A stretch of DNA of 64,000 nucleotides from Macrostomum lignano (GCA_002269645.1 NIVC01003438.1:33616-97615), one strand, 5' to 3'; shown: positions 4,801-45,023, counted from the first letter of the stretch. Program-made: numbers and translations. Notes: generated from the letters alone by a model not told the origin.

Positions 4801-5744
4801 CATCTCTCGCTCAGCCTAGCATTTTATTGATATCTACGCTCATAGCTGTTTCCCGGTCGCTGATTACTTATCTGCATTTCAAACGGCATTTCTTAGTCTC
4901 CCCTGCAGCTAATCCACTGTTTAGCATTAATCCCACCAGTGCAGCCCGGAAATCCCCAATGAAAAGGAAAATCTCAGCTTTAACAATGTCTGATCCTATT
5001 TAACAGACAGTTTCTCCATCACTGTGCCTCATCTATCACATTTGGGCAACTGCCTGCCTCTGGGATTTTGCACCTCGCGCTGCCTTCCACCAAGCTTTTT
5101 TAGACTCCGATATGCGCGCTGACGTTGGTTCGCATTCTGGGGCGGGATTTTATTCCCCTAATTCCCTTGCCTTGGCCCTCTTAGCTCAGTCTGACGCCTC
5201 GCCTGCCTCTTTCCTCCTTATATTCTGCCCTGGCAGCTGACTGGGAGAGGATTCTGGGCGCCGCCATCTCTCTCTCGCATTGGTGACTTCCATGCCCTCT
5301 ATGGAGGCTGTATACTATTTTTTCCTCTTTCCCAATCTGCGATGTACTTTTGTAGAAGCCCAGTTTTCTAAGGATCCGATGGAGCGCGCTTTGTTGGTTT
5401 TTGGCTTCTGCCTTTCGAAACTTATTATATTGTGCTGCTTGCAGGATGAAGGAAGCTGGATGATGGACGGTATTTATCCATGAAGCTGGGGCTCTGCAGT
5501 CTCCAGTTACACGACTGTTCCATTTTCGGCTGCTTAAACTGGGGCATCGAGCTGATTTCTAAGAAATATTTTCAAGGCCCTTTTTAGCCTTTTTTAGTTT
5601 GAACACAGGTGACTGCTGAGGGAACATGCAGTCTCACTAAATTCTGTTCATTTAATTGGAATTTTCTCTCAACTATTTATCTCAGTAGTGAATATCTCAA
5701 ATCCCAAATGTCTACAGCCTGTATTGGAGTCTCCTATCCTTTCT

Positions 5745-6800
5745 AGGAATCACCCAATTCCATTCCAGGAATCACCCAATTCCATTCCAGGAATCACCCA
5801 ATTTCATTCCAGGAATTACCCAATTCCATTCCAGGAATTACCCAATTCCATTCCAGGAATAACCCAATTCCATTCCAAGAATCACCCAATTCCATTCCAG
5901 GAATCACCCAATTCCATTCCAGGAATCACCCAATTCCATTCCAGGAATGACCCAATTCCATTCCAGGAATCACCCAATTCCATTCCAGGAATCACCCAGT
6001 TCCATTCCAGGAATCACCCAGTTCCATTCCAGGAATCACCCAATTCCATTTCAGGAATCACCCAGTTCCATTCCAGGAATCACCCAGTTCCATTCCAGGA
6101 ATCATCCAATTCCATTCCAGGAATCACCCAGTTCCATTCCAGGAATCACCCAGTTCCATTCCAGGAATCATCCAATTCCATTCCAGGAATCACCCAGTTC
6201 CATTCCAGGAATCACCCAATTCCATTCCAGGAATCACCCAATTCCATTTCAGGAATCACCCAGTTCCATTCCAGGAATCACCCAATTCCATTCCAGGAAT
6301 CACCCAGTTCCATTTCAGGAATCACCCAGTTCCATTCCAGGAATCACACAGTTCCATTCTAGGAATCACCCAATTCCATTCCAGGAATCACCCAATTCCA
6401 TTCCAGGAATGACCCAATTCCATTCCAGGAATCACCCAGTTCCATTCCAGGAATCACCCAATTCCATTCCAGGAATCACCCAGTTCCATTCCAGGAATCA
6501 CCCAGTTCCATTCCAGGAATCACCCAATTCCATTTCAGGAATCACCCAGTTCCATTCCAGGAATCACCCAGTTCCATTCCAGGAATCATCCAATTCCATT
6601 CCAGGAATCACCCAATTCCATTTCAGGAATCACCCAGTTCCATTCCAGGAATCACCCAGTTCCATTCCAGGAATCATCCAATTCCATTCCAGGAATCATC
6701 CAGTTCCATTCCAGGAATCACCCAATTCCATTCCAGGAATGCCCGAATTCCATTCCAGGATTCCTGGAATTCCTTGAATTTCTGGAATTCCTGGAATCTT
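5745..6800. repeat. 22-bp minisatellite (ccattccaggaatcacccaatt)
   Basis: Direct tandem copies; source of the spurious ORFs 5688-6777. Confidence 0.95.
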
Positions 6801-6865
6801 ATTCTTTCTGGTAATTCCGCCTGCCCCAGATTAATACTCTCTTAATCTCCATCCCCATTGTGCAG

Positions 6866-9800
6866 AGAGCGTCACGGAAGTGTCCCAATCAGAGCCGGGC
6901 ACTTTCTACGGCCTGTTCTCCCTGCAGAACTCGCCGTCGCCCGCTGGTCACAGCGCCCTCTGTCGGTTCACCCTGGCGGAGGCGGAGGCCCTGATCGGCA
7001 GCTCAAACTTCATCCAGCTGGAGCAGTCGGGCCTGCTGTCCTACACTGCCAAGCGGCTGTCCCGAGCCGCCTATGCCGCAGCCTCCGGCCGGCCTCGGCC
7101 CACCCTGTGCGAGTGGACTCCCGAGGAGGCCAGGCAGTTGAAGCTGAGCAATCTCAAAGTTGAGCACACGGCACCGCTGATGGCCAGGCCGCTGATATCC
7201 AACAGTTTGGTCACCTTTGACGCCGCGCCGATCGGCCAAGGCGGAGTCGCTTCGCTGTGTCGGGTGGCCGAGACCGAGCAGGGAGATGTGCTGGCGGTTG
7301 GGACAGGTGCGGCTGGGTGGCATCTGCTTGTTGCTATGCGAGATCTGCTTGTTGCTATGCGAGATCTGCTTGTTGCTATGCGAGATCTGCTTGTTGCTAT
7401 GCGAGATCTGCTTGTTGCTATGCGAGATCTGCTTGTTGCTATGCGAGATCTGCTTGTTGCTATGCGAGATCTGCTTTTTTCTATGCGGGATCTGATAGTT
7501 GCTATGTCATGTGGGATCTGGTAGTTGCTATGCGGGATATGGTAGTTTGCTATGGGGGATCTGGTAGTTGCTATGCGGATCTGGTAGTTGCTATGCGGGA
7601 TCTGGTAGTTGCTATGTGGGATATGGTAGTTGCTATGTGGGATATGGTAGTTGCTATGCGAGATGTAGTAGTTGCTATGCGAGTTGTAGCAGTTGCTATG
7701 CGAGATGTAGTAGTTGCTATGCGAGATGTAGTAGTTGCTATGCGAGATGTAATAGTTGCCATGCGAGATGTAGTAGTTGCTATGCCAGATGTAGTAGTTG
7801 CTATGCGAGGTGTAGTAGTTGCTATTCGAGATGTCAGTAGTCGCTATGCCAGATGTAGTAGTTGCTATGCGAGATGCGGTAAATGCTAAACTGGATCTGG
7901 TTTTTGCTAGGCTGAGGGTCCGGTATTTCTTTGTGTAAAATGTAAGTTTCTCTGCAGAATTACTGTTTGGAACAATCGGTACAAGGCGATATTCAGTTCT
8001 GTTTAATTACACAGAATCGCTCACGTATTTTTTGCGTCTGAACTGCTACTTCAGGCAGAAAGCATTCGCTAGACAGTTTAGATCGAAAAGATCATTGCTA
8101 ACTTATTCATATCTTCTGCTACTTTTAACTCTATCAGTTATCCATATAGTTGTGCCATGCCTGAGGCGCGTGTGCAAACAAAGTATCTGTTTTTGCGTGG
8201 CTTCTTTGAAGGGAGCTTCATGCGGGGGAGTGACGACACTCGGATGGCGCAGTGGCTACAGTTGAGGCCTAAGAGATCGAATGACTGCTTGCTTGGGTCT
8301 GGCTTGCTTCTTTCTGCTTGGCTGCGTCCTTGCTTTTTGCGCACAGCTTGTCACAGTGTGCGACTGTCTGTCTCTCTGAGTGTCTCTCAGTCTCTCTGAG
8401 TGTCTCTCAGTCTCTCTGAGTGTCTCTCAGTCTCTCTGAGTCTCTCTCAGTCTCTCTGAGTCTCTCTCAGTCTCTCTGAGTGTCTCTCAGTCTCTCTGAG
8501 TGTCTCTCAGTCTCTCTGAGTCTCTCTCAGTCTCTCTGAGTGTCTCTCAGTCTCTCTGAGTGTCTCTCAGTCTCTCTGAGTGTCTCTCAGTCTCTCTGAG
8601 TGTCTCTCAGTCTCTCTGAGTCTCTCTCAGTCTCTCTGAGTCTCTCTCAGTCTCTCTGAGTGTCTCTCAGTCTCTCTCAGTCTCTCTGAGTGTCTCTCAG
8701 TCTCTCTGAGTGTCTCTCAGTCTCTCTCAGTCTCTCTGAGTGTCTCTCAGTCTCTCTGAGTCTCTCTCAGTCTCTCTGAGTCTCTCTCAGTCTCTCTGAG
8801 TGTCTCTCAGTCTCTCTGAGTCTCTCTCAGTCTCTCTGAGTGTCTCTCAGTCTCTCTGAGTGTCTCTCAGTCTCTCTGAGTCTCTCTCAGTCTCTCTGAG
8901 TCTCTCTCAGTCTCTCTGAGTGTCTCTCAGTCTCTCTCAGTCTCTCTGAGTGTCTCTCAGTCTCTCTGAGTGTCTCTCAGTCTCTCTCAGTCTCTCTGAG
9001 TGTCTCTCAGTCTCTCTGAGTGTCTCTCAGTCTCTCTCAGTCTCTCTGAGTCTCTCTCAGTCTCTCTGAGTGTCTCTCAGTCTCTCTGAGTGTCTCTCAG
9101 TCTCTCTGAGTCTCTCTCAGTCTCTCTGAGTGTCTCTCAGTCTCTCTGAGTCTCTCTCAGTCTCTCTGAGTGTCTCTCAGTCTCTCTGAGTCTCTCTCAG
9201 TCTCTCTGAGTGTCTCTCAGTCTCTCTGAGTGTCTCTCAGTCTCTCTGAGTGTCTCTCAGTCTCTCTCAGTCTCTCTGAGTGTCTCTCAGTCTCTCTGAG
9301 TGTCTCTCAGTCTCTGAGTGTTTCTCAGTCTCTCTGAGTGTCTCTCCGTCTCTCTGAGTGTCTCTTAGTCTCTCTGAGTGTCTCTCAGTCTCTCTGAGTC
9401 TCTCTCCGTCTCTGAGTGTCTCTCCGTCTTTCAAAAATGCATCGTGTTTATTTTTGTTTTGTCATAATGATTCGTCTCAAACTATTCTTCCAGATTCCGG
9501 CTCCCTCATCAAGTTTTTTGTCCCAGCAGCATCATCATCAGCATCATCAGCAGCATCATCAGCAGGTGCAGCAGCATCATCAGCAGCTGTAGCAGCGCAG
9601 GCGCACCAAATCGAAACCCTCCAGCTGTTCCCTCCGGGCAGCGGTGCCCGCATTGACAGTCTGTCCGCCCGTGCTGGTCGTCTGTTTGCCGTCTCGGACA
9701 GCGTGGGCGCCGCCGTGTGGCTGGCCGAGTCGCGCTGCAATCGGCAGGCCGGCTGTGTGGCCTGCGTGTCGCTGCGGGACCCCCGCTGCAGCTGGCGGTT

Positions 9801-11364
9801 GGACCTGCGGGAGTGCGCGTTTGCTGCGGAGCCTGAGGGGTGAGCAGCGATTGGGGCTTGGCGTTCACCGTGACTTTAGAAGGAGGCGTTCAACGTGACT
9901 TTAGAAGGAGGCGTTCACCGTGACTTTAGAAGGAGGCGTTCACTGACTTTAGGATGCGTTCACCGTGACTTTAGAATGCGTTTGTTCATTTTGACTTAAA
10001 AAGGCGTTCACCGTATCTGCAGTGATCTTAGATGCATTCACTGAGTTTTAAAGGCATTCACAGGCGGTCAAATGTGAATAATAGGCGACTATGCGAGATT
10101 TCACAGTGATGGATTACCGCTGGAATCTCATTAAAGCTTCAAAGCTCTTCACTTTCCAGTCTGACCAACGCGTCCTCCGGGCATCACAGCGGCTGCCCCA
10201 TCAGCTCAAGAGACCTGAACAGCCGTGAGTTGCATTCAGAATATGCTATTATCATTAGTACACCTGCACTTTTACCTCTCCCCAATGCTCTGCCGGCTTT
10301 TAACTGCTGCAGGCCTGCCATCGCTCGCTCCACCAACGCGGGGGGCCTCGCAGACCTCGGCGCTGCCGCCCCTCCTTGGAGCGTCTGGCGGCAGCCTGAC
10401 CGACTCTGCGTCACTCGCGGCAGCAATGAACTCCGACGGAGTCAGCGGAGTCCCAGTCGGCAAATTCGTGGCCGCCCTCATCGCCCTGTGCCTGCTCTGC
10501 TTCTCTGTCGGCTTCTTCTTGGGCTGCTTTGTCCGGCGCCGGCGCAACGTGCGGCGGGATGTCGGCAGAGGCGGCGCTGAGGGCAGCGCAGCGGAGAGGG
10601 AGAAGTGCATCGGCGAGGTTCCGGCCAACTGCCACGGTGCTGCGGCTGCTGCGGCTGCAGGTGAGACTGAAGGACTTGCTGGGTCTGAGGTTGTCCGGTT
10701 CTTTCAGGTTCAGGGCTAATGTCAGGGCCAGGGCCAGGGCCAGGGCCAGGGCTAGGGCTAGGGCTATTGTCAGGGATATTGTCAGGGCTAGGGTCAGGAC
10801 TAAAGAGTCAGGGCTAGTGTCAGAGCTAAAGCTAGGGTCAGGGCTAGGGTCAGAACTAAAGCTAGGGTCAGGACTATAGAGTCAGGGCTAGGGTCAGGAC
10901 TAGGGTCAGGGCTAGTGTCAGAGCTAGTGTCAGAGCTAAAGCTAGGGTCAGGGCTAAAGCTAGTGTCAGGGCTAAAGCTAGTGTCAGGGCTAAAGCTAGT
11001 GTCAGGGCTTTCCTCAGCAGTTGAGCGCCCGTCCTCTCACCCGCCATTTTTCCCCACCGCAGGCGACGTGCCGCTGCGGCTCCGCCGGTCCCAGCACGGA
11101 GAGCGCGGCCACCAGGCGGTGTCAAACGAGTACACGGAGCACCCGCCGCAGGCAGTGGCCTCTTACGCCACCCCGCCAGCGGTCCCAGCCGTGATGAGGA
11201 TCGTCAGCAGCCACTCGTCGGCTCTGGACAGCTATCAGAGCTGCAGCGCCGATGTGCCCGCCATCGATGATGTTGACGAGGACGAGGAAGAGAACTCCGG
11301 GATGCACACTCGGCGCGGTCAGCCGATCGGAGACCATCGAGACAATGACTGGAGACACATCTAG
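6866..11364 (+). CDS. Transmembrane semaphorin (class 1/6-like: Sema-PSI-TM-cytoplasmic tail), 5' part outside window
   Basis: Exons 6866-7306, 9494-9839, 10160-10224, 10313-10660 and 11063-11364 have AG/GT ends and compatible phases (1,2,1,1). Sema motif TFYGLFS...SALCRFTLAE; PSI motif CNRQAGCVACVSLRDPRCSW...C; TM FVAALIALCLLCFSVGFFLGCFV followed by RRRR; stop at 11364. Confidence 0.85.
7321..7875. repeat. 21-bp minisatellite in semaphorin intron (gagatgtagtagttgctatgc)
   Basis: Direct tandem copies starting just after the donor at 7307. Confidence 0.95.
8370..9430. repeat. 20-bp satellite (tctctcagtctctctgagtg)
   Basis: Direct tandem copies. Confidence 0.95.
9861..9980. repeat. 25-bp short tandem repeat (gcgttcaccgtgactttagaaggag)
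   Basis: About 5 decaying copies. Confidence 0.85.
10705..11010. repeat. Telomere-like hexamer array (tcaggg/ctaggg/ccaggg) in semaphorin intron
   Basis: 6-bp period of xxAGGG variants. Confidence 0.9.
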
Positions 11365-12417: not shown

Positions 12418-14506
12418 ACGGAATGCAATATACCAATATACCAAACTACACCGTGTGTCAGGTCTGTATTCCATAATTTCCTGAGTTAAAATAGGAAATT
12501 ATGATAGAAATAAGTAATACGTACTGAGCAACATGTTCTACTTTTTCCATATTATCCATATTCCAGAAAAAGGAAAGGAATAGATTTTACTTCCATTTTG
12601 CCAGAAGTCTCCATTTGTCAGCTCCACTCTGAAACCGGTGGTCAACTTTTCTCAGATCTCAGCCCCAAGTGACGCAATTCCGACATGCACGCGACCGCCG
12701 TTCCCGTCTCAAATTACAGTTCTGCACTGACAGTAATCTACTGATAGTATAGTAATGCCACAAGCATATACTGGTGTAACTGGCCTTACTACTGCAATAG
12801 TTTTCGAACATTTGTTTTTTGAACCCGACATTTTTTTAATGCTAAACTATTTCACCCAAGACGCCAAGAACGAGGATGTACGACTGATCAGCTTTAGCAC
12901 TGCCTAGAGTTGTCGCGGGCTCTCGGTGGTTGGGCACTGAGCTTTGGAATTTTTCGTGCAGCGTTTCTTCAATGCAGTTCACGATCTGCTTTCCCATTGT
13001 CTCGCTCTCACTCTGTGCCAAGCTTTTGTTTTGTTGCTCATCCCAGCAGCCTATACTCGTGAAACCATGGAAAGCACCACCTCTCTCTCTTGTCTCTCGT
13101 GTATCTCCCACGGACCACTTGGTATCTCCCAGACGTATCCCTAAACGTCTGATCGCGTACCTCCAGCTGTAGTTCCGAAGTGCTCATCAAGTAGTCACCA
13201 AGCAACCAATCCGGTTTGTTTTGAGATGCGCAGGTTTTTCAGCGGCGATTGAACTTAAAGTTTAGAACAAATTTATTGTTTAAATATTTTCTATTAACTA
13301 TACGAGCGTATTGAACTTTAAATTAAATCAATCACAGTCAGAAAATTTACGGAAACAATAAATAATATAAAATATAGATAATTAAATAGGGTTAAGGCAG
13401 ATCAACTTGAGTATAGATATCGCTTGAGCTGAAGAGCAAAAAAACAAAAACTGCGTTTGCGGCGCAAAGAGGGAGCAAAAATCGAATAAATAATCCAGAA
13501 AAGCACGTACAGGTATCGGGTTCGTCTTTGATCTGAATTGGAAATCCTGTAAAGATAAAAAATTAGCGGCTAAATTATCTGAGACCATCAGAACGGTCTG
13601 ATATAAAGAGGGCACGGCAACACAAAACACGGCACAGAAAAATTTCGGCTGCTTGGATAAACTGGAGTAGTGCTTCAGCAACAAAATGATAGTTTGTCAA
13701 AGGCAAAACATCTCGATTACAAAGCTTTAGACAATTTTTCTGGCTACTGGGCACCAGAGCGAAACAGGCTCTGCCTACCAATTGTAGCTACATGGTCACT
13801 ATACGCTGTTCGATATCATTCAATTCAGCCACTTGTTAATTTTTCACCCCAAAGAAACCAGCGGTCAACATTTCTCAGATCTCAGCCCCTAGTGACGCAA
13901 TTGACACCACTCACGCGGTTCTCCTCTCAACTGTGGGTGATGCAATTGGCGTCACATGGAGAATTTAATCACAGAAAGGTTTTGCTTCACAAATCAAAGC
14001 ATCATTTTACCTTCAATTTCATTCGAACTGGAATTCACTTTATTAGACAATCGGAAGCCCAACTTCGACACTTATAGCTCTGTAAATGTAAATCTTCATT
14101 CATTTTAGAAAAGCCACTTTTCAATATGAACTCCAATTCATATCGGACAATCTGTTGACGCAACTTATATAAACTCTGATTCACTTTCAATTTTGTCTTT
14201 TTTGTGCGTTAGAGTTTTTCAGAGCCAACAACTTATAGGCTTTCTTCCTAATAGAAATTTGTGTCTGCTGTCGATATTGAAAACGAGTTTGTCCAGAATG
14301 AATAGAGATTTACATGTACAGAGCTATAAGTGTCGAAGTTAAGCTTCCGATTGTCTAAAATAAATTGTAGTTCGAAGGAAATTGAATGTAAAATGGTGTC
14401 ATGTACTCTCAGTTCTCAGACTTTATAAACTTGTTCTGGGTGGAAACTCTAACATGTTGCTGAGTGTACATATACATAGCGTCTCAGAAACCGCTAAAAA
14501 AATTGT

Positions 14507-15502
14507 TCAGAAGCCTCTAAGCTTGTGAGCTCTTTCCGGATCGAAGCTGACTTGGCGTGAAAGCTGGTCAACTTTCTGCGGAACAACACGATACAGGCTG
14601 TTTCTCATCCAAACAGGGTTCCTCTGCAAGTGGTCGCTCACATTTGTCATGATAGTACTGAGGTCGAGCTCACGGAAGTTTTTCTCGATGAAATCGCAAA
14701 CAGTCTGCACGTACAGCGAACCCGTGTTGATGCTTCTAAAGGCGACTGAGCCTGGACTGTTGGCGTAGCAGACCATAAAGTCGCTCTCTGGGGTACAGAC
14801 TGTGAGGTTGTACCTTGATTCTTCTCGCGAATAGGAAGCAAAAGTTCGATCCTGGCGGCTTCCGCGACCGGCCTGAATGAAGAACACCTTTGGCTTTCCT
14901 TCTAGGCTTCGGCAGACAGAGGTCTGTGATGCGATGGTAGTGGCGGTAAAGTCTTCAGCCTTTCAATAGTGAATTCCAGTCTAGTCCAGACTTTTGCAAA
15001 TGCGAGAAACCAATTCTTTTTCAGACAATATTACATTTTGTTTCAATATCATACTCGTACATTTCTATACGGAGCTATTTGAATAACCCTATTATTGCAT
15101 ATATCTAGATAACCATAATAGAAGCTAAGCATGTATTTTTGGCTTACCTGAAACCTTTCGGTCACTTTTCGAATTTCGTAGGGACACCCGTCCCTACCGT
15201 AGATGCAGTCGTGGCTGCCGTGCGCCATCAGGAAGCAGACAAAGCTGCCGTGCTTGGCAAGGTCTCGTGACTTTTTAATCTCACTGAGGAAATCATCCAA
15301 CTGCTCAGTAGTAAGGTCTTTTTTTATCTTGACGATGAAGCGCAGCCTCTCGAATACCCGTTTCGCTTGTTCAACATCACGATCAGAACCCTTACGCTCT
15401 GTGATACTGAATGTGATGTCACTTCCGGACTCGTACTTGCTGATGTTGATGATCAGGCAGTAGCCTTGCGGGTCCGTCACTGGATAGAAATCTCCCTCGA
15501 GC
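14507..15502 (-). CDS. Caspase (peptidase C14) domain exons of paralog A
   Basis: Exon 15502-15148 contains the catalytic His motif MAHG. Exon 14923-14507 contains KPKVFFIQAGRG (GGT at 14869-14867) and the p10 motifs SDFMVCYAN and TGSLYVQ. Confidence 0.92.
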
Positions 15503-18500
15503 CTGGAATGCAGCAGACGCTCAATATACTCGTAATTTTTTATACTGACAACAAAAACATAAATTATGTAGTAGCACCTTGGTGGTTGATGTCGAACTAT
15601 TTTGGCTCGCATAGCTCCGCTGAAGTTTCTAAAAAGTTTTTTTTCATTGTCAAAGGGAAATTCATTTGAACTATTCAATGAGTGAATATTTGTTAGCAGT
15701 TTTCACTGGACAAATAAAGTAACATCGACTCACGGATCTGCTTCCTCCGCTGTATCATCTCTTGGTTCCTCCGAATGGTCCGTGACAATTTTTCGCCTGA
15801 AATGGTCAAAAAACTTTGTAGTCTATTAGCTATGCTTGCAGAAGCTGTGTGTGATGTAGCTGTGTGCTGTAGCTGTGTGCTGTAGCTGTGTGCTGTAGCT
15901 GTGTGCTGTAGCTGTGTGCTGTAGCTGTGTGCTGTAGCTGTGTGCTGTAGCTGTGTGCTGTAGCTGTGTGTGCTGTAGCTGTGTGCTGTAGCTGTGTGTG
16001 CTGTATCTGTGTGCTGTAGCTGTGTGTGCTGTAGCTGTGTGCTGTAGCTGTGTGCTGTAGCTGTGTGCTGTAGCTGTGTGCTGTAGCTGTGTGTGCTGTA
16101 GCTGTGTGTGCTATAGCTGTGTGCTGTAGCTGTGTGTGCTGTAGATGCGTGTTGTAGCTGTGTGCTGTAGCTGTGTATGCTGTAGCTGTGTGTCCTGAAG
16201 GAACTCACGGCAGTGCCAGAGGCTCGTTGAAGTAAACCTTGCCTTCGTAACTAAAATTGCAGAGTGGAGTCTGAAGTCAGGGGAATTGAGGGTGAGCACC
16301 CTTGCTCCATGCTTCATTCTATGTTTTATCAATCTTCACTCTGTTCAACTGCCGAGCTTGCAACGTTCCAATTCTTTACCGTTGAAGTGATCTTAATTTA
16401 AGCATGTTATGCCCAATGTTATTTTTTAGTCTAATGCGAACTTCAGAAGGTTTTTCTATCAGGAAAGTACAGCACATGCTTGTGCACCAGTAAAGATCCT
16501 ATTGCGTGAAGCGAACACCAATGAAATGCGTTATAGAAATCATATATATACTAGCGTTCAGTGAGAATGAAGCCTCTCTCCAGTTTTTCCCGGTTCTCGG
16601 CTCTCCGCCTCTTTGCCTCCTCAACTGCTCCGCTAGCTTGCCCCAACAATCGGGCCTGAACTCTAATATCCCGATTTAACAGAGATAAATCCGGACAAAC
16701 GTCAATTCGTGCAACAATATCGATAAGTAGCCTGTGGCTCCATTTTCACTGAATTGCTTAACAAATTTGCGTAATTGCGTGATCAATATCCTATTAGGAA
16801 TTGCTACTAACATTGATTAGTAATAAACATCTTGTTGAAGGTTAGAGATCGAGAGAAACAAATCGAACCTCCGACTTATTTGATTCAACAGCAACATCAA
16901 CGATCATAGTCATCGTCAGAGGGGCACACCCCCGCAACACATTATTCTAAAACATTTGACCGTAATAATACAGAAAAGTACAACAAAAACTGCCCCATTT
17001 TACGAGCGTAAGTTAAAACTATTTTTTTCACAGCAAAATGCTTGCTGCGCTGGTGTCTCACCATAGACCGTATATTCCATGGGCCACTCACTATTAAAAC
17101 TACTCGTATGTAAAAATTAAACCACTTTAAAGCTCACTTTCAGGGATTTATTGACATAGATTTTATTTTGCGGGATTTAATCGATCACTTTCCCGGGCAT
17201 ATTGCAAGGATTATTGTATGTATGTAAATAAGCGAGCTTCTCTCTTCTCTTCCTTCGTGACTCGAGACATTTCTTAATGAAATTTCGTCTATGGTAAGAA
17301 TGTGGGGGCTTCGCCTCTACACCCCAGCAGGGGCTTCGCCCCCACACCCCCATCCCCAACTTCAACCATAGACATACAAGTACCCCGAAAAAAGCTAGAA
17401 AAATCTTTAGGCCGACCACAGTCGCTGAAAGTTTAAGTTCAGTAGCTGAGGGACATAGAAAGTATTTTTGCAATGGAGAAGAAATATAAATTTATTTCAG
17501 TTGCACGAAGATACAGAAACTTCACAACCGCTAAAAAGACTGCCGTATATGAAAGTAAGTGAAAAAATTTGACACTTTTCTGTAAAAGCGGCAAACCTTT
17601 TAGGCAGACTTGAATATGCCTCTGCTTCTGCCACGGCTTCTTGGAAACTCAGAACTTTGTGGTCCTTGACGATGAGTTTTCCGATGACAGCTTGGTTGCC
17701 GAGACAGCAGTTTAGGTCACGCAAGCGCTAATCTTTAATCAAGAACTAACAGAAGCCTTTAGTTGTTGGCACCATGATCTCACGCAGGGCCGTCTGGAGG
17801 TCATTGAACGACTTGCTTCCAGGTTTGTCTGGCCGCCGCGCTATCTGCCGATTTTTCGTATAGAGCCGGCGACAGTCGCAGCAGCAAGACTTGAGCTCGT
17901 GCGGCTGGATCCCAGTTGAACAATGCGGCTCCAATCTCAAAGCCAACGATCCAAATTGGCCGTCTCCTCGAGTCTTCCAACCTCAGACATGCCCGACGTT
18001 GGACTCCACTTTGGGTGACGCTCTGGTTATCACTCGGAGTTGCTCGTGACTGGGGGCTGCTTGAAGACACTGCTCCATTGCGGCTTGCAGAAATTGTAGC
18101 CGAATTGGTTCTTGCCTGTCCAAAAGACTTTGTTGGATCCCCTGCTGTCTTGGCTGGCTCCTTGCTCATTGCGTCAGGTTAGAATCGCTGCGACGCCAAT
18201 ACTACTACTGAGGCTGTGTTTATTTGAGTTGCAGCTCGCAGCCGATAAACTACGTATTTTTCTGCTCAGCCGTAGGCCGTGCTCCAGAGCTTTCTATCTT
18301 AATAAATTAGCTTCTAAATTAGTATGAGCATAGTAAACTTCCAACTAAGAAAAATACATTAGCCTGTGTTCTGAATTTTTATGTATGGCCAAGCTACTAC
18401 AAAAATGTGAAAAATGCCCACTCAGAGCAACTGCAGTCAGCTGCTCAATATTCAATCATAATTTACAGCACATATAGTTTTCATACATACATTCTCAGAC

Positions 18501-20484
18501 ATTCTCATTCTCAGTCGCCATGAAAACTCACCCACGCAGCAGCTCAGCCAGTCTCCAGTTTCTCTTTTGTGTGGCCAAGGCTAGCGCAGTCCTATACTTA
18601 TTGTTCTTCAGGCTCCAATCCGCCCCTGAGTCCAGCAGAACCTGACTGACGTGCTGGGGCGCCCAGCAGGTTACTGCCTGTATGAGGGGTGTGTATTCAC
18701 ACTGATTCCTCGCATTGGCGGAGGCTCCGGCAGCCAGCAGAGCGGAAGCTGCGGCAGAATTGCCATCTTTGACTGCATGATGCAAACAACTGTCAGCAGC
18801 AGTATTCGCACAGGTGGGATCACCAAGCTCCACCAGCTGCTTCCACAGAGCCTCATCACTCCTCCAAGCTTCGTTCATCGCAATATAACCCCGTCTGTCA
18901 TAAGCATCCATCTCCACCAGCTTCATCCGATCCTCAGCATTGAGCTGAGCTACGCCCATCAACGCGGTGAGACCCAAAAAGTCAGGCAGGTCGCAGCTGT
19001 CGCGGGTCGCTGCTCGTCGCAGTCCCGCCAAGTCGCGCGCGTTCACCAGCCGCTGCAGCTTCTGTCGATCCGCCTCCTCCTGCAAAGACGAACGGAAACT
19101 TTGAGCACAGCTACTCAGCTGCTGCAACATCAGCACCGCAGATTCCACTCACCTGAGCTGTCAGACCGGAGATAGTGCCATATTCATCCACAACTAGCCG
19201 CATCTCCCTGCAACAGCAAAAATGAGCAGCGATGCGAATATGCAATTTTCTAAAATATGACAATTCCGATTGACAAAAAATTTACTTTAATAAGGTCTAG
19301 ATAATTTTTCATGATAAATTTAGTAAATGGAAATTCCTACTTATCTGAGCTGCTTACAGATGGAGTTTCCAAGAGGACTGCAGCAGCTCTGCAACAATCA
19401 GCATTGGCGAGAGCGCATCCGACTTCTCACACGCAGCTCATTTTCCATTTCTGCAGCATTAGTTTCCTTCCATCTCACAATGTCTCACAAAGCACTCACG
19501 CACAGCCTCCCAGTTCTCCATCTGCAGCTCAACCCACACACTCTCACTGCACACCGAGGCCCTACAGCTTCCATTCTTGACTGAGATCAACCGGCACCCC
19601 ATTGGCTGGGAGGCAGCCAGCTTATCAAGCAGCGAACTGCTCACTCACCGCTTGATGTAGCTGGCCAGCTCTGAGTGGCCGCTGAGCCTCGCCAGTGCGG
19701 ACGCTGTCCAATCTTCGAGATCTTTCAGTCTGAGCAGCCGCGACCTCTTCGAGTTTCTGTGCTGTCTGCATTCATTGAACCTGTCCTGCCTCAGCAGGTG
19801 CAGCAGGTGCTTGGCGCATTTCCAGCTTCCAGTCCGCGCCGCCTCCATCAGCGGAGTGGCGCCGTTGTCATTCCGCAGCCACTTCGCATCGAACGACAGC
19901 AGCGTCAGCAGCCGCAGGTGGTCCCGCCGGGCTGCCAGGTGCGCAGCCGTGTTGCCGTTCGCGTCAGCTGCCTTGGGGATTGCGCCCAGCTCAAATAAGT
20001 ACAAGATGCACTTTTCAGTGTGCACGGGAGTCTCAGGAGCGTCGGCCACCAGCATGAGGACGGTCCGACGATCTGCATCAGCGCTGGTGACCAGCTGGCG
20101 CGTTGCCAGCCGCCGCACCTTGCCGAAGTCACCTTGGATGACGAGCTGGGCGAGAGTGTGGAGATCGGCTGGTGAGTCTCCGACGCTTTCCCGGTTGCTG
20201 GGGTCCGGCTTAGTGAGTTGCTGCAACTGCAATTAAAGCATCTCTAACCTAAGTGCAAATCTTAGCACTGAAGTATTTTAGGAGACTTGAATTTACGAGC
20301 GTATGAGCTACTGGAGTAGCTGAGAGATGACTAATTTATTACTAATTATTAGTTACTAATTACAGATTACTAGTCAATTTCAATAACTTCAACTTACCGC
20401 TCTGTCAGAGAACATGGTTATTTTTTCGCTTTCTGACGAAGTGCTTGACGTGCTCAAAGAGCTTGAACTTGAAGAGCTGGACAT
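14507..20484 (-). CDS. Ankyrin-ankyrin-caspase fusion, paralog A (745 aa), catalytically dead pseudo-caspase (QAGRG)
   Basis: Nine exons: 20484-20398, 20226-19649, 19207-19153, 19079-18532, 16250-16209, 15796-15734, 15670-15578, 15502-15148, 14923-14507. All are GT-AG with matching phases and total 2238 nt without a stop. About 8 ankyrin repeats, then a caspase (GYCLIIN, ERKGSDRD, FLMAHG, GKPKVFFIQAGRG, GSLYVQ). Exon 1 is the least certain. Confidence 0.85.
15845..16195. repeat. 11/13-bp repeat (tgtgtgctgtagc) in intron 5 of paralog A
   Basis: Direct tandem copies. Confidence 0.95.
17590..18170 (-). mobile_element. Degenerate LTR-retrotransposon gag-like remnant in intron 4 of paralog A
   Basis: Frameshifted peptides FEIGAALFNWDPAARAQVLLLRLSP and RLRDLNCCLGNQAVIGKLIVKDHKVLSFQEAVAEAEAY resemble Ty3/gypsy gag. 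This intron is 2.3 kb versus 0.4-0.6 kb in paralogs B and C. Confidence 0.5.
18532..20226 (-). CDS. Ankyrin-repeat exons of paralog A (578, 55 and 548 nt)
   Basis: Motifs GNTAAHLAA, GATPLMEAA, DSCLHHAV and EYTPLIQA. The ORF-track stops fall inside GTGAGT donors (19648, 18531), so these are internal exons. Confidence 0.9.
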
Positions 20485-21911
20485 GGCAAAGCGCAGGGTG
20501 CTTGTTGGCGCAGGATGGCTGGGAAGTTCGGCATTGGGGCGGGGCAGGGACCTCTGCGGCAGATTTTATTGCTTTGGCTGCTCGCGGAGGACTGGCTGAG
20601 CGGCTTTGCTGTTCATCTCTTGCATTGTACTGAAGACCAGATAGGCAGGCTGCACAGTGCGCAATACGATGCATATTTTATGCTGTGCTGTGAAACAATA
20701 ACTTCTCTTCTCATCTCACCCGTCTCTCTAATTAGCAACAGTCTTTCAAAAGCTGAGGTTAGCATTATCTAAAAATGGGCTTGCTGCCAGGACCATTAAA
20801 TAGACAATGGGCAGGTATCCAATGGGCCGTTGGAAATTTAATTTTCTTCACGAATGCCAGAATGTTTTTTGTAATATAAAACAACGAATGAACAAAATAC
20901 GCTCGTAGTAGCAATTATAACGGTTAGAATAAATCGGCTTCAACGAATTATCACTACAATCAATTTAAAGACGCCACAACCCTCCCACTCTCAATCTCCA
21001 TCTCGTAGGCTAAACGTTTGCATTTTTCTCAGCAGGTGGTACAGTATTCTGACCTGTCGATCCAAAAGGGTGGCCAACGCGAACATCTGATAAGTTGACC
21101 CTGCAACCAATGCATTCCAGGCATAAAAAAGTTCGATCGCTCAATCTCGATTGGCTATTGTCGATTTAGGCTGCCCATTGTCGAGATCAGTATCTTACCA
21201 AATGGTATGTAGGTGTGTCATCGCTATTGGCTTGATTTGTGGCATCCTGACCTGACTCCATATCCACAAAGAATTGTGTTGTGTCGTGTAACTTGACAGG
21301 CCAACTTCATTATAATTATTACGCTAATGTTTCTGGTATAACGTAAATGCTAATTATAGTATTAATATTATTCCTGTCATTTACTTATACTGCCACTTTA
21401 AGTAGAGTAGTTGATAAAGTACCTGTACAATTTATCACTAATCACGCTACATCTTTGGCTCTTGAATTTATCGATCGTGCAGTTTCTCTAGCGTGAATAA
21501 AATATCGATCATGTCGTTTTTCTAAAATGCTAAATACACTAAAGTCTAAAATATATATAAAGCAACTGTGCGCACCTAGAAATTTACTCTGCAACTCATC
21601 TGGAAACTTCAAGTCTCGGCTATACAACAAATTGCAGTTGAACGACAAATCAATTTCATCAATATCGACTAAATTTCCACGAGTAGAAAGTGGTTAAAAC
21701 CTGCTCCGGTTAGTTAGTTTTTGATGCCTTATCTGATTTTCCAACACTGCACATCTGTTTATATAGGCCTATGACATTTGAACTTTTACAAATCCTCTTG
21801 CTCTTTGAAATCTTTGCAGTTTGACGTGTGTATGCCGATGTCTATGGCCAGAAAGTCAGAGGTCACATATAACGGTCTCGAGGCGAGCGAGATGAGACTA
21901 TACCTTTTAGT

Positions 21912-22711
21912 TTTAACAATTTTTTTGGACATAAGTGAAGTTAATTTAGTCATTAGTCAGCTCAGTCCTAGAAAAGTCATAGACTATAGACTATAGACTA
22001 TATAGACCATAGACTATAGTTAAGAAATGAAATCGATTTAGTCAAGTGCCACGTATTTAAACCTTTCCATGACTTGATTTTAGTCAAAGTGAATTTTATT
22101 TAGTCATCATGGCGGCAGAGTTCATGGCTTGCAAAGTTTGGTTGCAGAATTCATGGCTGAACTGTCTGCATTGGTTGATGAGCCGTTCTGCCTTCTGTTT
22201 GACAATGCTCGTGCCCATTGGAATCCACCAGCCATGGAGGTAGAGCAAGAGTTCAAGCCTTTATCACCTTATTCTCCGTTTCTTGAGCGTGAACTGGAGG
22301 TCAGTATAGCAGCTGCCTCACTGCGAAGCCTGGCATCGTGAGAGCCTTCGATTCATACCCCGCTGCATTGCCACGAAAGACATCGAAGACATCGTTGATT
22401 GAGTCGAAAAGTGAAGCGTCGCAACAATAATTTGTTGTGTCTTGTGTTGTGTTGTGTTCGTTTGTGTTCTTCTCAAATCGAAAAAATAATTTAACGAACG
22501 AAAGAGGAAAATCGCCAACGACTAAATAAAATTCACTTTGACTTAATAAAAGTTACGAAAGACGGATTTAGAGAACCTTGACTAAATCGATTTCATTTCT
22601 TTACCATAGTCTATGGTAAACCCCGAGTGCTGACTACATCAAACTCACTTTTCTAGGACTGAGCTGGTTAATGACTAAATTAACTTCACTTATGTCCAAA
22701 AAATTGTTAAA
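21912..22711 (+). mobile_element. Non-autonomous IS630/Tc1-mariner derivative with long terminal inverted repeats
   Basis: About 21912-22105 is the reverse complement of about 22520-22711. The internal fragment at 22129-22290, LLFDNARAH...LSPYSPFL, matches the DDE_3 motif DNAxxH...LPPYSP. Confidence 0.75.
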
Positions 22712-23331: not shown

Positions 23332-23603
23332 CAGTGGCGGATCCAGAGTTTCATTTTGGGGGGGGGGCGGTCCAAGTTTGGGGCGCCAACACAAGTGGAA
23401 GGGGCGCCAATTTTTAAGCTAGGGGGCGCAAAAAATGCGCGTAGGGGGGGGCGAAAAATCAAGCTTAGGAGCGCAAAAAATGCGTATAGGGGGCGAAAAA
23501 TCACGTTTAGGGGGCGAAAATTTAGGTTTTTGGGGGGCGCAATATGTTCGGTCAAGCTATTTGGGGGGGGGGGCGTCCCCCCCCCCCCCTATATCCGCCC
23601 CTG
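23332..23603. mobile_element. hAT-type MITE (272 bp)
   Basis: TIR CAGTGGCGGAT / ATCCGCCCCTG; perfect 8-bp target-site duplication ATATCAGG at 23324-23331 and 23604-23611. Confidence 0.85.
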
Positions 23604-23778
23604 ATATCAGGTACATGAAATTGACCAGAAAGAAATTTCTGTGCTTCATTTTATAATTATGAGTGATGTTTTGAGCTTCCTGCAGTGTCTGAACGGTTTC
23701 CATAGCTACTGGGAAAACACTTGGTACTTGGCAGTTTCTGTTGGGAGCGCGAGGTTTTCCAGCACGCGGTTCATTACG

Positions 23779-24304
23779 GACTGACTGACTGACTGACTGA
23801 CTGACTGACTGACTGACTGACTGACTGACTGACTGACTGACTGACTGACTGACTGACTGACTGACTGACTGACTGACTGACTGACTGACTGACTGACTGA
23901 CTGACTGACTGACTGACTGACTGACTGACTGACTGACTGACTGACTGACTGACTGTCTGACTGACTGACTGACTGACTCACTGACTGACTGACTGACTGA
24001 CTGACTGACTGACTGACTGACTGACTGACTGACTGACTGACTGACTGACTGACTGACTGACTGACTGACTTGAGTGAGTGGGTGACTGACTGACTGACTG
24101 ACTGACTGACTGACTGACTGACTGACTGACTGACTGACTGACTGACTGACTGACTGACTGACTGACTGACTGACTGACTGACTGACTGACTGACTGACTG
24201 ACTGACTGACTGACTGACTGACTGACTGACTGACTGACTGACTGACTGACTGACTGACTGACTGACTGACTGACTGACTGACTGACTGACTGACTGACTG
24301 ACTG
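23779..24304. repeat. (GACT)n microsatellite
   Basis: About 525 bp, nearly perfect. Confidence 0.98.
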
Positions 24305-24978
24305 AACTCTAATTTCTGAATAAAGCATGGAATGTTTAACAAATGCTATTGTGTTTGACAACAGAGTAAAATTCAAACAATTCATTTCTTTCTTAGATGG
24401 AATTTTAATGAATGTGAGTGAAAGAAAACCAAACAATTAATTCAATTAAATATTGATGAAAGAAGCTGACTCCGATCATGGAACATTTCAACAGAGTGAA
24501 TTCAATATTGAAAAGTCTTGCAATAACTTCGTAAATAATTTTACCATTTTTACTACAGCTGTCGAACGCAAGGTGAAGTGAAATTGGAAAAATCGAAAAC
24601 ATCGGAGTGCAATGGCGCTCAGTGGGCTGCTAAGGAAAGCAGAATTGGTTAACTTTATTATTAAGAAATTTATGTATATATTCTGGCTAAAATATGATTG
24701 AACTGTCAATTTGTTAGTAAAATCGCAATTCCCAACGAATTCGACAACAATGGAACTGCCATTATTATTTGCCTAGCAATTTCTCAGTGTTTTTATACTC
24801 TGAGCTCTGAGTTTCAAACGCACTCTGTGCTCTCGTGCTAATTCTCGATTTAGCTGAGAGTAAATTTGTGTCGGCAGTGTCGGTTGAAGAATTAAGTAAA
24901 AATATTCTTGAATTAAAAAACAATTATCTGATACCAGCTTATAAGTACGACAGTTTTCATTTTTCGTTTCAAAAATTC

Positions 24979-33532
<8,554 letters not shown>

Positions 33533-35960: not shown

Positions 35961-38900
35961 TCACAGCGGCTTCAAAGGCTCGTCGAAGAACTTCTTGTCT
36001 TCGTACCTGAAAAAAGAAGTGCAGAGTATAAACTCAGAGTGTGGATTTCAAATTGCAGAGTATAAACTCAGAGTGTGGATTTCAAATCACAGAGTGTAAA
36101 CTCAGAGTGTGGATTTCAAATCACAGAGTGTAAACTCAGAGTGTGGATTTCAAATCACAGAGTGTAAACTCAGAGTGTGGATTTCAAATTGCAGAGTATA
36201 AACTCAGAGTGTGGATTTCAAATCACAGAGTGTAAACTCAGAGTGTGGATTTCAAATCACAGAGTGTAAACTCAGAGTGTGGATTTCAAATTGCAGAGTG
36301 TAAACTCAGAGTGTGGATTTCAAATTGCAGAGTATAAACTCAGAGTGTGGATTTCAAATCACAGAGTGTAAACTCAGAGTGTGGATTTCAAATCACAGAG
36401 TGTAAACTCAGAGTGTGGATTTCAAATTGCAGAGTGTAAACTCAGAGTGTGGATTTCAAATTGCAGAGTATAAACTCAGAGTGTGGATTTCAAATTGCAC
36501 TATAGTTCTTACTGCCCATTTATACTACAAAAACTAAAAAATTCCACTCAGAGCAACAGCAGTCAGCTGCTCAAAATTCAATGATGAGCAATAATGCTTT
36601 TCAGCGATTTCGAGCATAGGTCAGAGAGACATTCTCAGTTGCCATGGAAACTCACCCACGCAGCAGCTCAGCCAGCTCGCTGTTTTCCGTCTGTGTGGCC
36701 AAATCCAGCGCAGTCATGCCGTCTCTGTCCTTCAGGCTCCAATCAGCCCCTGAGTCCAGCAGAACCCGACCGACTGCGGCGGCGGTGGCGGGGGGCGCAA
36801 AGATGGCTGCCAGCATGAGGGGAGTCAATTCACAGTATCCTCGATCGTTCCTGGCGTTGGCGGAGGCTCCGGCAGCCAGCAGAGCGGAGGCTGCGGCAGA
36901 ATTGCCACCGAAGCCTGCCCAGTGCAGGCAACTATCAGACCTTGAATCCACACAGGTGGGGTCACCCAGCTGCACCAGCTGCTTCCACAGAGCCTCATCA
37001 CTACACGAGCTGTTCAGAGCTGCCCACATCAACGCGTTGAGACCACATCTGTCAGGCAGATCGCAGCTGCCGCGGGTCGCCGCTCGCCGCAGCCTCGCCA
37101 AGTCACCCGCCTCGGCCAGCCGCTGCAGTTCCTTTCGATCCGCTTCCTCCTGCAAAAGCAAGCGGGAAATTTGAGCACAGCTGCTCAGCTGCAGCCGCAT
37201 CGGCACCGCAGATGCCGCTCACCTGGACTGTCAGGCCGGATAATGAGGCATTTTTTCCCACAACCAGCCGCATCTCCCTGTAACAGTAAAAATGAGCAGC
37301 GAATTCGCAATTTTCCATATCAGACAACTACGACTGCCAAAATAAAATTTAATTTAGTACGATACTAGCAATCTTCGCCCCCCGATGGGGGGCATCTAGA
37401 TAGAATCTCTGGCTCTCTATAAGTATCAAAAAGACGGCCAAATAAAGCCTTCACATAGACAATAGAAAAACTGCTCAAATGAAGTGCAATGCAAAAAGAA
37501 AACATCCCAGGACAGCAAGCAACCCCCCGATAGCAGGCACCCCAGATAGCAAGCATCCAATTGATAGCAATTATCTATCTTAAATAGCAAGCATCCACCA
37601 GACAATAAGTATCTAGTGCAACAATTTCCTTAGCTTTATAGTGGCTACTTTATGATTGGCATGACGCTTCTTTTTACGTTTGTAATTGTCTCCATTATGA
37701 CATGGTGGCTCTTTTATGTTTGACATGGTGGCACTTTAATGTCTGCAATGATGGCTCTTTAATGTCTGACATGGAGTCACTTATACGCTTGACATGGTGG
37801 CTCTTTAATGTTTGACATGGTGGCTCTTTAATGTTTGACATGGTGGCTCTTTAATGTTTGACATGGTGGCTCTTTAATGTCTGAAATGGAGTCATGTATA
37901 CGCTTGACATGGTGACTCGTTGATGTTTGACATAGTGGCTCTTTTATGTTCGACATGGTGGCTCTTTAATGTTTGTAATGATGGCTTTTTAGTGTTCACC
38001 ATGGTGGCTCTTTAATGTTCGACATGGTGGCTCTTTAATGTTCGACATGGCTCTTTAATGTTCGACATGGTGGCTCTTTAATGTTCGACATGATGGCTCT
38101 TTAATGTTCGACATGGTGGCTCTTTAATGTTCGACATGGTGGCTCTTTAATGTTTGACATGGTGGCTCTTTAATCTTTGACATGGTGGCTCTTTAATGTT
38201 AGACATGGAGTCACATATATGTTTGACATGGTGGCCTTTAATGTTTGAAATGATGCCACTTTTGTTTGACATTGTGCTTCTTTTATGTTTAGCATTTTGT
38301 GTTTTTAAGGTTTTTGAATAAAAAAATCTTTTTGCACTACTAAGATTCGAATTGAGGTCGCTGAATTAGCAGTCCAGTCTGTTCGCATCTAGGCTATCTC
38401 TTGTCGATTGGAGAACATGAATTGTGGCCCTTATAATTCAATTCTTATAGCAAATCGGTTAGAGGAGAAAGTTATAACATAATCAATTTCTCAGTCAGCC
38501 AGTATCAGTCTCAATTTAAGTTAGCAATATGGTTACGCAATTTAAATCAAGTCGTGTGTTCATTTCTTTGGCACTGTTTTCAACTTGCTGTGATGCAATC
38601 TTTATCAGAATTGAAATTCAGTCAGTCAGGTTTTTCTCTAGCATTCTTACAATGCATTTCAGGTCAAAAGAGCTGCTTGACCTTTGCAGAAAATCATGTT
38701 TTTCGAATATTTAATCCGTTTAATATTGATCAATTTCTTAGCCAAGATGCATGCACCATCCCAGGAAAATTTTGATCGAATGGTGCAAGTTTGAAGAGAA
38801 TCGGTTGAGCCATTCTCGAAAAAATCAATTACACGCACGCACGCACGCACAAATACAGCGCAAAATTAGTATATAGACTAGCCATTAGCCCCCCCGCTGG

Positions 38901-44900: not shown

Positions 44901-44958
44901 TTCTGATTGAACAGTGCATGTTCGAAGAAAATCGGTTGAGCCGTTTTTTTAAAGTCGA

Positions 44959-45023
<65 letters not shown>

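Follow-up and report, generated by a model that had tools for sequence, protein, structure and literature searches.

The window analysed here is a stretch of 64,000 nucleotides from the free-living flatworm Macrostomum lignano (contig C3438, positions 33616-97615, Mlig_3_7 assembly); all positions given below without a contig are counted from its first letter. Its minus strand carries a nine-exon ankyrin-repeat caspase gene, hereafter A, annotated in GenBank as BOX15_Mlig016858g2 (P0001, 731 aa). The spliced and translated exons reproduce P0001 exactly, and all introns are GT-AG. Exons 1-4 (20484-20398, 20226-19649, 19207-19153 and 19079-18532), which match Ank_2 and related Pfam families, encode a Ser-rich N-terminus and two ankyrin-repeat blocks, i.e., the pro-domain, modelled mostly with pLDDT above 85. 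Three small linker exons follow (16250-16209, 15796-15734 and 15628-15578, from the same exact mapping and with GT-AG boundaries); the introns between them hold a tandem-repeat array, and the acidic linker that they encode is modelled with low pLDDT and is probably disordered. Exon 8 (15502-15148) encodes the p20 core, including Arg511 (15396-15394) and His569 of the catalytic dyad (15222-15220). Exon 9 (14507-14923 including the stop codon, with an AG acceptor; Pfam PF00656, E=1e-43) encodes the end of p20 with a QAGRG pentapeptide, a shortened inter-subunit linker and the p10 subunit. The caspase domain spans residues 476-731, and Ank_2 and Peptidase_C14 are combined in a single protein.

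Mlig_3_7 was annotated from transcripts assembled on the genome (StringTie/TACO) together with a de novo transcriptome, and not by ab initio prediction (PMC5730564), so the RNA behind the spliced nine-exon model comes from A or from its near-identical twin A' (see below). A simpler structure, in which the second ankyrin block (ANK2) is spliced straight onto the p20 exon at an acceptor further upstream, was superseded by this transcript-based model with its three extra small exons. A search for RNA-derived protein fragments across the p20/p10 exon junction of A retrieved a single unrelated paralog from M. lignano and no contigs derived from RNA, and a literature search with the identifier Mlig016858 was without result.

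Two further copies lie on the minus strand of the window. Paralog C has its p20 exon at 55495-55142 and its p10 exon at 54692-54267, with a QACRG pentapeptide, a REETD-EAPAPV linker and an in-frame TAG at 55315-55313; the upstream exons for the ankyrin pro-domain and linker (55574-59055, from the mapping of P0012) follow the same plan as in A, and GenBank annotates the gene in truncated form (P0012, 498 aa). The proteins of A and C are 84% identical in the first ankyrin block (ANK1), 61% in ANK2, 86% in p20 and 75% in p10. Copy B, found when the window was searched by blastn with the A locus, consists of ankyrin exons only (ANK1 at about 48032-49047, a micro-exon and ANK2 at about 36523-37359). 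Its exon groups are about 10.7 kb apart, with repeat-rich sequence between them, and its first ankyrin exon is 92% identical to that of A at the DNA level. A remnant caspase domain was sought for B, and tblastn of the caspase domain within the window matched A and C only.

Genome-wide, there are at least 148 caspase-exon matches and at least eight further close loci combining ankyrin repeats (ANK) and a caspase domain that have open QACRG caspase exons, as well as further family copies with stops. The original prediction described A as the only uninterrupted caspase copy. This holds within the window, where C has its TAG and B lacks caspase exons, but not across the genome, where intact QACRG copies are many and the duplicate of C on contig C1159 (G000:C1159:92646-93044) is open, with GAG (Glu) at the codon that is TAG in C. 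Since this duplicate is intact, and C is thus not generally broken, the repaired C that had been proposed for heterodimer assays is unnecessary. Copy D likewise has a twin on C1159, frameshifted just after QACRG, and an open copy on C1804; in duplicate pairs, one member is often disabled (TAG versus GAG in C, the frameshift in the twin of D).

The caspase genes have varied neighbours. In the minus-strand region 24979-31931, an ORF of 12 ankyrin repeats (30660-31931) lies upstream of a Mab-21/nucleotidyltransferase-like gene (palm-domain ORF at 29716-30132, Mab-21_C ORF at 24979-26523). The latter gene is split by an ORF for a piggyBac-type transposase (27457-29205; DDE_Tnp_1_7, E=9e-62), within an insertion at about 27114-29509 that is absent from the collinear block of C1804. 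On the plus strand, ORFs at 6835-9843 have weak matches to Sema (E=5e-7) and PSI (E=2e-4), and probably represent exons of a gene akin to semaphorins or plexins, upstream of the caspase cluster. Tandem-repeat arrays at 5613-6845, 7071-8006, 15693-16250, 23557-24436, 43485-44380, 55638-56820 and 59431-60461 give rise to spurious long ORFs in several frames; two of the seven sit in the homologous intron of A and C. Such arrays fit the repeat-rich genome of M. lignano (PMC5730564).

Gene A belongs to the caspases (peptidase family C14A): the p20/p10 fold is present, and phmmer against the PDB matches caspase-3 with E=5e-34. Every close homolog comes from M. lignano and has both ANK and Peptidase_C14 domains. 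In the 10 clusters checked out of the top 150 HMMER hits, the named relatives from outside Macrostomum are two caspase-8-like proteins (from a nemertean and a sponge), a mammalian caspase-10 and an unnamed mite protein, and no neodermatan sequence is named. The nearest named outside relatives of the protease domain are thus caspase-8/10-like, and the analogy with cFLIP, the Cys-less caspase-8 paralog invoked in the original prediction, is apt.

Flatworm ANK caspases have been placed beside the death-effector-domain (DED) caspases (Krasovec et al. 2024, PMC11463336), and they share with A an ankyrin pro-domain followed by a caspase domain and a DED/caspase-8-like affinity. The same study describes no Cys-less member among them, reports them from parasitic species only and states that they are restricted to parasitic flatworms and lacking in free-living ones. 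M. lignano is free-living, and its ANK-pro-domain caspases have expanded to three copies in the window (14507-20484, 36523-49047 and 54267-59055) and at least eight close loci elsewhere. Their abundance in a free-living flatworm bears on the view that they are an innovation of the parasitic ones. Two M. lignano proteins annotated with protein-kinase domains share parts of A: P0014 shares the ANK1 block (79% identity) and P0025 the caspase domain, a kinase-caspase combination noted in PMC11463336. This sharing suggests that pro-domain shuffling is frequent in the family.

The catalytic position of A departs from that of its relatives. The minus strand reads CAG GCC GGT CGC GGA (Q-A-G-R-G) at 14875-14861, and the GGT codon of Gly612 (14867-14869) aligns with Cys163 of human caspase-3. 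This codon is TGT in 10 of the 10 close paralogs examined, including C (CAG GCC TGT CGC GG(A/C)), and TGC in the more distant C894, which bears out the replacement described in the original prediction. The retention of the catalytic His and of the arginines of the S1 pocket, also predicted, is confirmed by alignment to caspase-3 structures: His569 (MAHG) corresponds to His121, Arg511 (TERKGSD) to Arg64, Gln610 to Gln161 and Arg656 (AFRS) to Arg207. By this alignment, the Arg/Gln/Arg set that recognises Asp in the S1 pocket is complete in A, while the His-Cys dyad is incomplete in both A and A', where His569 is kept and Cys is replaced by Gly612. A single T-to-G change has turned the nucleophile into Gly, so that A can neither act as a cysteine protease nor cleave substrates.

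The second change affects the inter-subunit linker. All 11 other paralogs carry RE(E/Q)TD-EA(P/G)APV in this region. The corresponding sequence is REESR-YN in A and REETR in A'; protein and codon alignments both show Arg in place of Asp, followed by a gap of six codons. In A, the Arg630 codon AGG (14813-14815, minus strand) stands in place of the Asp of the (E/Q)TD site and is directly followed by an 18-nt deletion relative to all paralogs. The claim that A lacks the Asp processing linker is therefore correct in that the linker is six residues shorter and the conserved subfamily cleavage site is gone from A and A', but it needs qualification, since two other linker Asp residues remain in A, at SRQD618 and PESD641.

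Elsewhere, the caspase domain has changed little. At positions that are invariant in the other 10 close paralogs, A and A' have 12 private differences, six of which stem from the single linker event. They correspond to seven private events: R45Q, V46A, L113V, C137G, D175R with the deletion, P189T and A205V. The presumably active lineages have 13 (D), 10 (C1780) and seven (C617) private changes, and A has five apart from Cys137Gly and the linker event. The private changes are thus few and focused on the nucleophile and the processing site, suggesting that the damage to A is targeted and not general. The stretch VVPQKVDQL, identical in A and most close paralogs, lies beyond the end of the caspase-3 alignment and is taken to be the β6 strand of the dimer interface. 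The AlphaFold model of A has the six-stranded caspase fold (mean pLDDT 73, ankyrin blocks above 85, disordered linker at 613-639), with a target TM of about 0.8 to caspases 3, 7, 8 and 9.

Both changes are found in a second copy of the gene. A' lies on a collinear contig (G000:C1804:42940-50222) and has nine exons, a frame of 731 codons, the same GGT codon and the same 18-nt linker deletion. It differs from A by 21 coding-site differences, 12 amino acids and its intron structure. In both copies, the frame is open over all 731 codons and the 16 splice sites are kept; no stop, frameshift or lost splice site was found in A or A', as opposed to the TAG of C. The UniProt entry P0002, an older model, is the A' sequence with QAGRG. 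The original prediction considered a single sequencing error unlikely, and the occurrence of the same Gly in A' and P0002, together with the deletion in A' on a separate contig, excludes such an error. As GGT is common to A and A', the Cys-to-Gly change predates the duplication that produced them.

The sequenced M. lignano line, DV1, has additional large chromosomes and 180 Mb of duplicated blocks that are at least 95% identical (PMC5730564). Over tens of kb, C1804 and the window align collinearly, with 88-99.6% identity, and the alignment of 13790-22197 with G000:C1804:42224-51928 is a mosaic: identity is 88-89% at 7.5-11 kb of the window, 96.9% in the caspase exons and 99.6% at 18.3-22.2 kb, where the ankyrin exons and the 5' end of A lie. 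Between A and A', identity is 99.6-100% in exons 1-4 and 94-99% in exons 5-9; intron 4 differs in length by about 1.2 kb. From this mosaic, part of the gene seems to have been converted or homogenised recently. The p20 exon of A resembles the C27/C1414 type and its p10 exon the type of C, and the tree of the paralogs may be distorted by gene conversion.

The evidence from substitution patterns that A is maintained is weak. We compared A and A' using Nei-Gojobori estimates and fitted a codon-likelihood branch model to 12 paralogs. Over the whole coding sequence, there are 8.5 synonymous and 12.5 nonsynonymous differences (ω=0.45; one-sided binomial p=0.038), and in the caspase exons six of each (ω=0.27). 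The branch model gave ω of 0.32 for the background, 0.68 for the stem of A and A' and 0.29 for their tips; in likelihood ratio tests, ω=1 is rejected for the tips (p=0.039) and not for the stem (p=0.48), and a model with three ω classes is not better than a single ω for these paralogs. In the clean noncoding sequence flanking the caspase exons, 1.7% of positions (19/1121) differ between A and A', and the dN of 1.0% is not significantly lower (Fisher p=0.30), so that taking the neighbouring noncoding DNA as the neutral reference removes the nominal significance of the dN/dS comparison. Only 3.5% of random substitutions in the coding sequence of A create a stop; neutral evolution along the entire stem would have left the frame open with P≈0.003, as opposed to P≈0.48 for both frames after the 21 changes that followed the duplication. 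This suggests that Cys was lost late on the stem, or that constraint continued after its loss. The dN/dS comparison suggested in the original prediction as a check on maintenance thus gives a divided answer, with tip ω of 0.27-0.45 (p≈0.04) on one side, and the lack of significance relative to noncoding DNA and a stem ω compatible with 1 on the other.

The genome contains other Cys-less caspases that are much older. We examined about 80 further caspase matches and 30 loci from the at least 148 matches; divergent copies escaped a strict pentapeptide pattern and were inspected through their longest open frames. Among the matches examined, A and A' are the only Cys-less member of the close subfamily. 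More distant Cys-less subfamilies, all with open frames, have the pentapeptides QAEKQ (four loci), QTEQQ (three loci), QAVQP/QAAQP (three loci, His also lost), QTHRD (two loci, His replaced by Cys) and QTSQK (two loci). They lie at G000:C6:623000-691000, C166:128000-200500, C1268:76000-79600, C1269:22700-28900, C1035:214800-215600 and C1680:29600-30400 (loci L040-L041 and L072-L090). Each of these genes occurs as a set of two to four nearly identical copies, and QSCRD copies lie in the same clusters. The QAEKQ and QTEQQ genes, 53% identical to each other, both have Glu where the Cys would be, with saturated dS, a dN of 0.38 and ω≈0.19; across the older Cys-less genes, between-clade ω is about 0.15-0.26. 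Judging from these rates, the QAEKQ/QTEQQ-type pseudo-caspases are clearly old and under purifying selection. The older Cys-less genes as a group share with A the genome, the fold and the loss of the nucleophile, but they belong to distant subfamilies (28-41% identity to domains of the QACRG, QSCRD or A type), several lack His, and they are long diverged and clearly maintained. That older dead caspase-fold proteins are under purifying selection makes a functional fate for A plausible, not proven.

We conclude that A is a genuine young pseudo-caspase, which arose by duplication within a large Macrostomum-specific family of caspase-8-like caspases with ankyrin pro-domains. By its sequence, it is a paralog of active-looking, initiator-type caspases that has lost the nucleophile and kept the fold and the recruitment domain. 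The reading towards which we lean, tentatively and as something a little short of probable, is that A is a pseudo-caspase of the regulator type. It would be recruited via the same ankyrin pro-domain as its active paralogs and, via a small-subunit interface that is unchanged, would pair with these paralogs as a partner that is neither catalytic nor processable. This pairing would raise or lower the activation of the paralogs, in the way that FLIP(L) modulates caspase-8 (PMC7586951). The unaltered VVPQKVDQL stretch is an indirect hint of such pairing. By analogy, such a cFLIP-like regulatory role is plausible but unproven.

Almost as likely, A is an incipient pseudogene that recently lost its Cys and its linker site in a redundant birth-and-death family, and is drifting without having acquired a stop or frameshift yet. 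The stem ω, which is compatible with 1, and the A/A' dN, which is not significantly below the flanking noncoding divergence, are consistent with such decay; the 21 substitutions since the split are so few that the open frames are nearly an even chance. Sister copies do decay (C has its TAG, the copy of D on C1159 is frameshifted and other copies have stops), and a genome with 180 Mb of near-identical duplicated blocks (PMC5730564) tolerates null copies. Against decay stand the tip ω values, which are nominally below 1, the intact frame and splice sites in two copies, and a model of A that derives from transcript assembly. Furthermore, A has no more changes at invariant positions than active-looking paralogs, those it has are focused on Cys and the linker, and older Cys-less caspases are demonstrably conserved in the same genome.

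It is unlikely that A acts as a non-catalytic protein without pairing with caspases, either as a trap or decoy that binds Asp peptides in its S1 pocket or as an ankyrin scaffold or sensor in a cluster of the innate-immune type. The retained Arg511, Gln610, Arg656 and His, the intact and confidently folded ankyrin blocks, and the neighbouring ankyrin-repeat and Mab-21/nucleotidyltransferase-like genes would suit such functions. However, private substitutions of A fall in stretches such as NPVWMRNSLYR, which we take to be loops of the substrate groove, and this argues against a conserved binding groove. Finally, that GGT is a sequencing or assembly error, or that A is still an active protease through another nucleophile, we regard as highly improbable. 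The codon and the 18-nt deletion recur in a contig with 21 coding differences and another intron structure, and the older UniProt model agrees; engineered procaspase-3 with this Cys replaced (QAARG, PDB 4jqy) is a standard dead enzyme, and the pentapeptide of A offers no alternative Cys.

A can be compared with FLIP(L) (CFLAR; PMC7586951), a pseudo-caspase of vertebrates and paralog of caspase-8/10. Both proteins are duplicates of an initiator caspase of the caspase-8 type that keep a recruitment pro-domain and a protease-like fold, lack the catalytic Cys and lie in a cluster with active paralogs; the action as a non-catalytic dimer partner is proposed for A by analogy with FLIP(L). They differ in several respects. 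The pro-domain of FLIP(L) consists of tandem DEDs, whereas that of A consists of ankyrin repeats, with no DED detected. In FLIP(L), Arg315 stands in place of the dyad His and Tyr in place of the catalytic Cys; in A, the His is retained and the Cys is replaced by Gly. Caspase-8 still cuts FLIP(L) between the two subunits, but A no longer has the linker Asp site conserved in its subfamily. FLIP is an ancient gene conserved throughout the vertebrates, whereas A is of very recent origin and unproven as a maintained gene. The ankyrin pro-domain, the retained His and the Gly in place of Tyr rule out that A is an ortholog of CFLAR.

Lineage-specific inactive duplicates that modulate a paralogous active caspase are also found in other animals, namely CASPS18 in Aedes aegypti, and CSP-3 and CSP-2 in Caenorhabditis elegans. 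They have short pro-domains or none, CSP-3 lacks the large subunit, and their roles as enhancers or inhibitors were shown experimentally, whereas the role of A is predicted by analogy.

Few pseudo-caspases are known and they have mostly been studied in vertebrates (FLIP), and A would be a very young natural one. An intact sister copy lies next to it, and the genome also has older Cys-less relatives whose conservation is clear. As RNAi and transgenesis work in M. lignano, the change from protease paralog to regulator could be tested in this organism. If A is merely decaying, it represents an ordinary step in a birth-and-death gene family. Its interest is raised somewhat by the previously unreported expansion of ANK caspases and by the series of older Cys-less caspases. 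More broadly, though we consider this rather doubtful at present, M. lignano may repeatedly make and keep Cys-less caspases within a very large lineage-specific expansion that involves ankyrin, kinase and other pro-domains, with A and A' as the youngest case, seen shortly after the switch when only the nucleophile and the processing site have gone, and with FLIP-like regulation arising independently and convergently on an ankyrin-recruited caspase-8-like system. If so, the genome would offer a natural time series of the birth of pseudoenzymes, in a phylum that is reported to have lost FADD.
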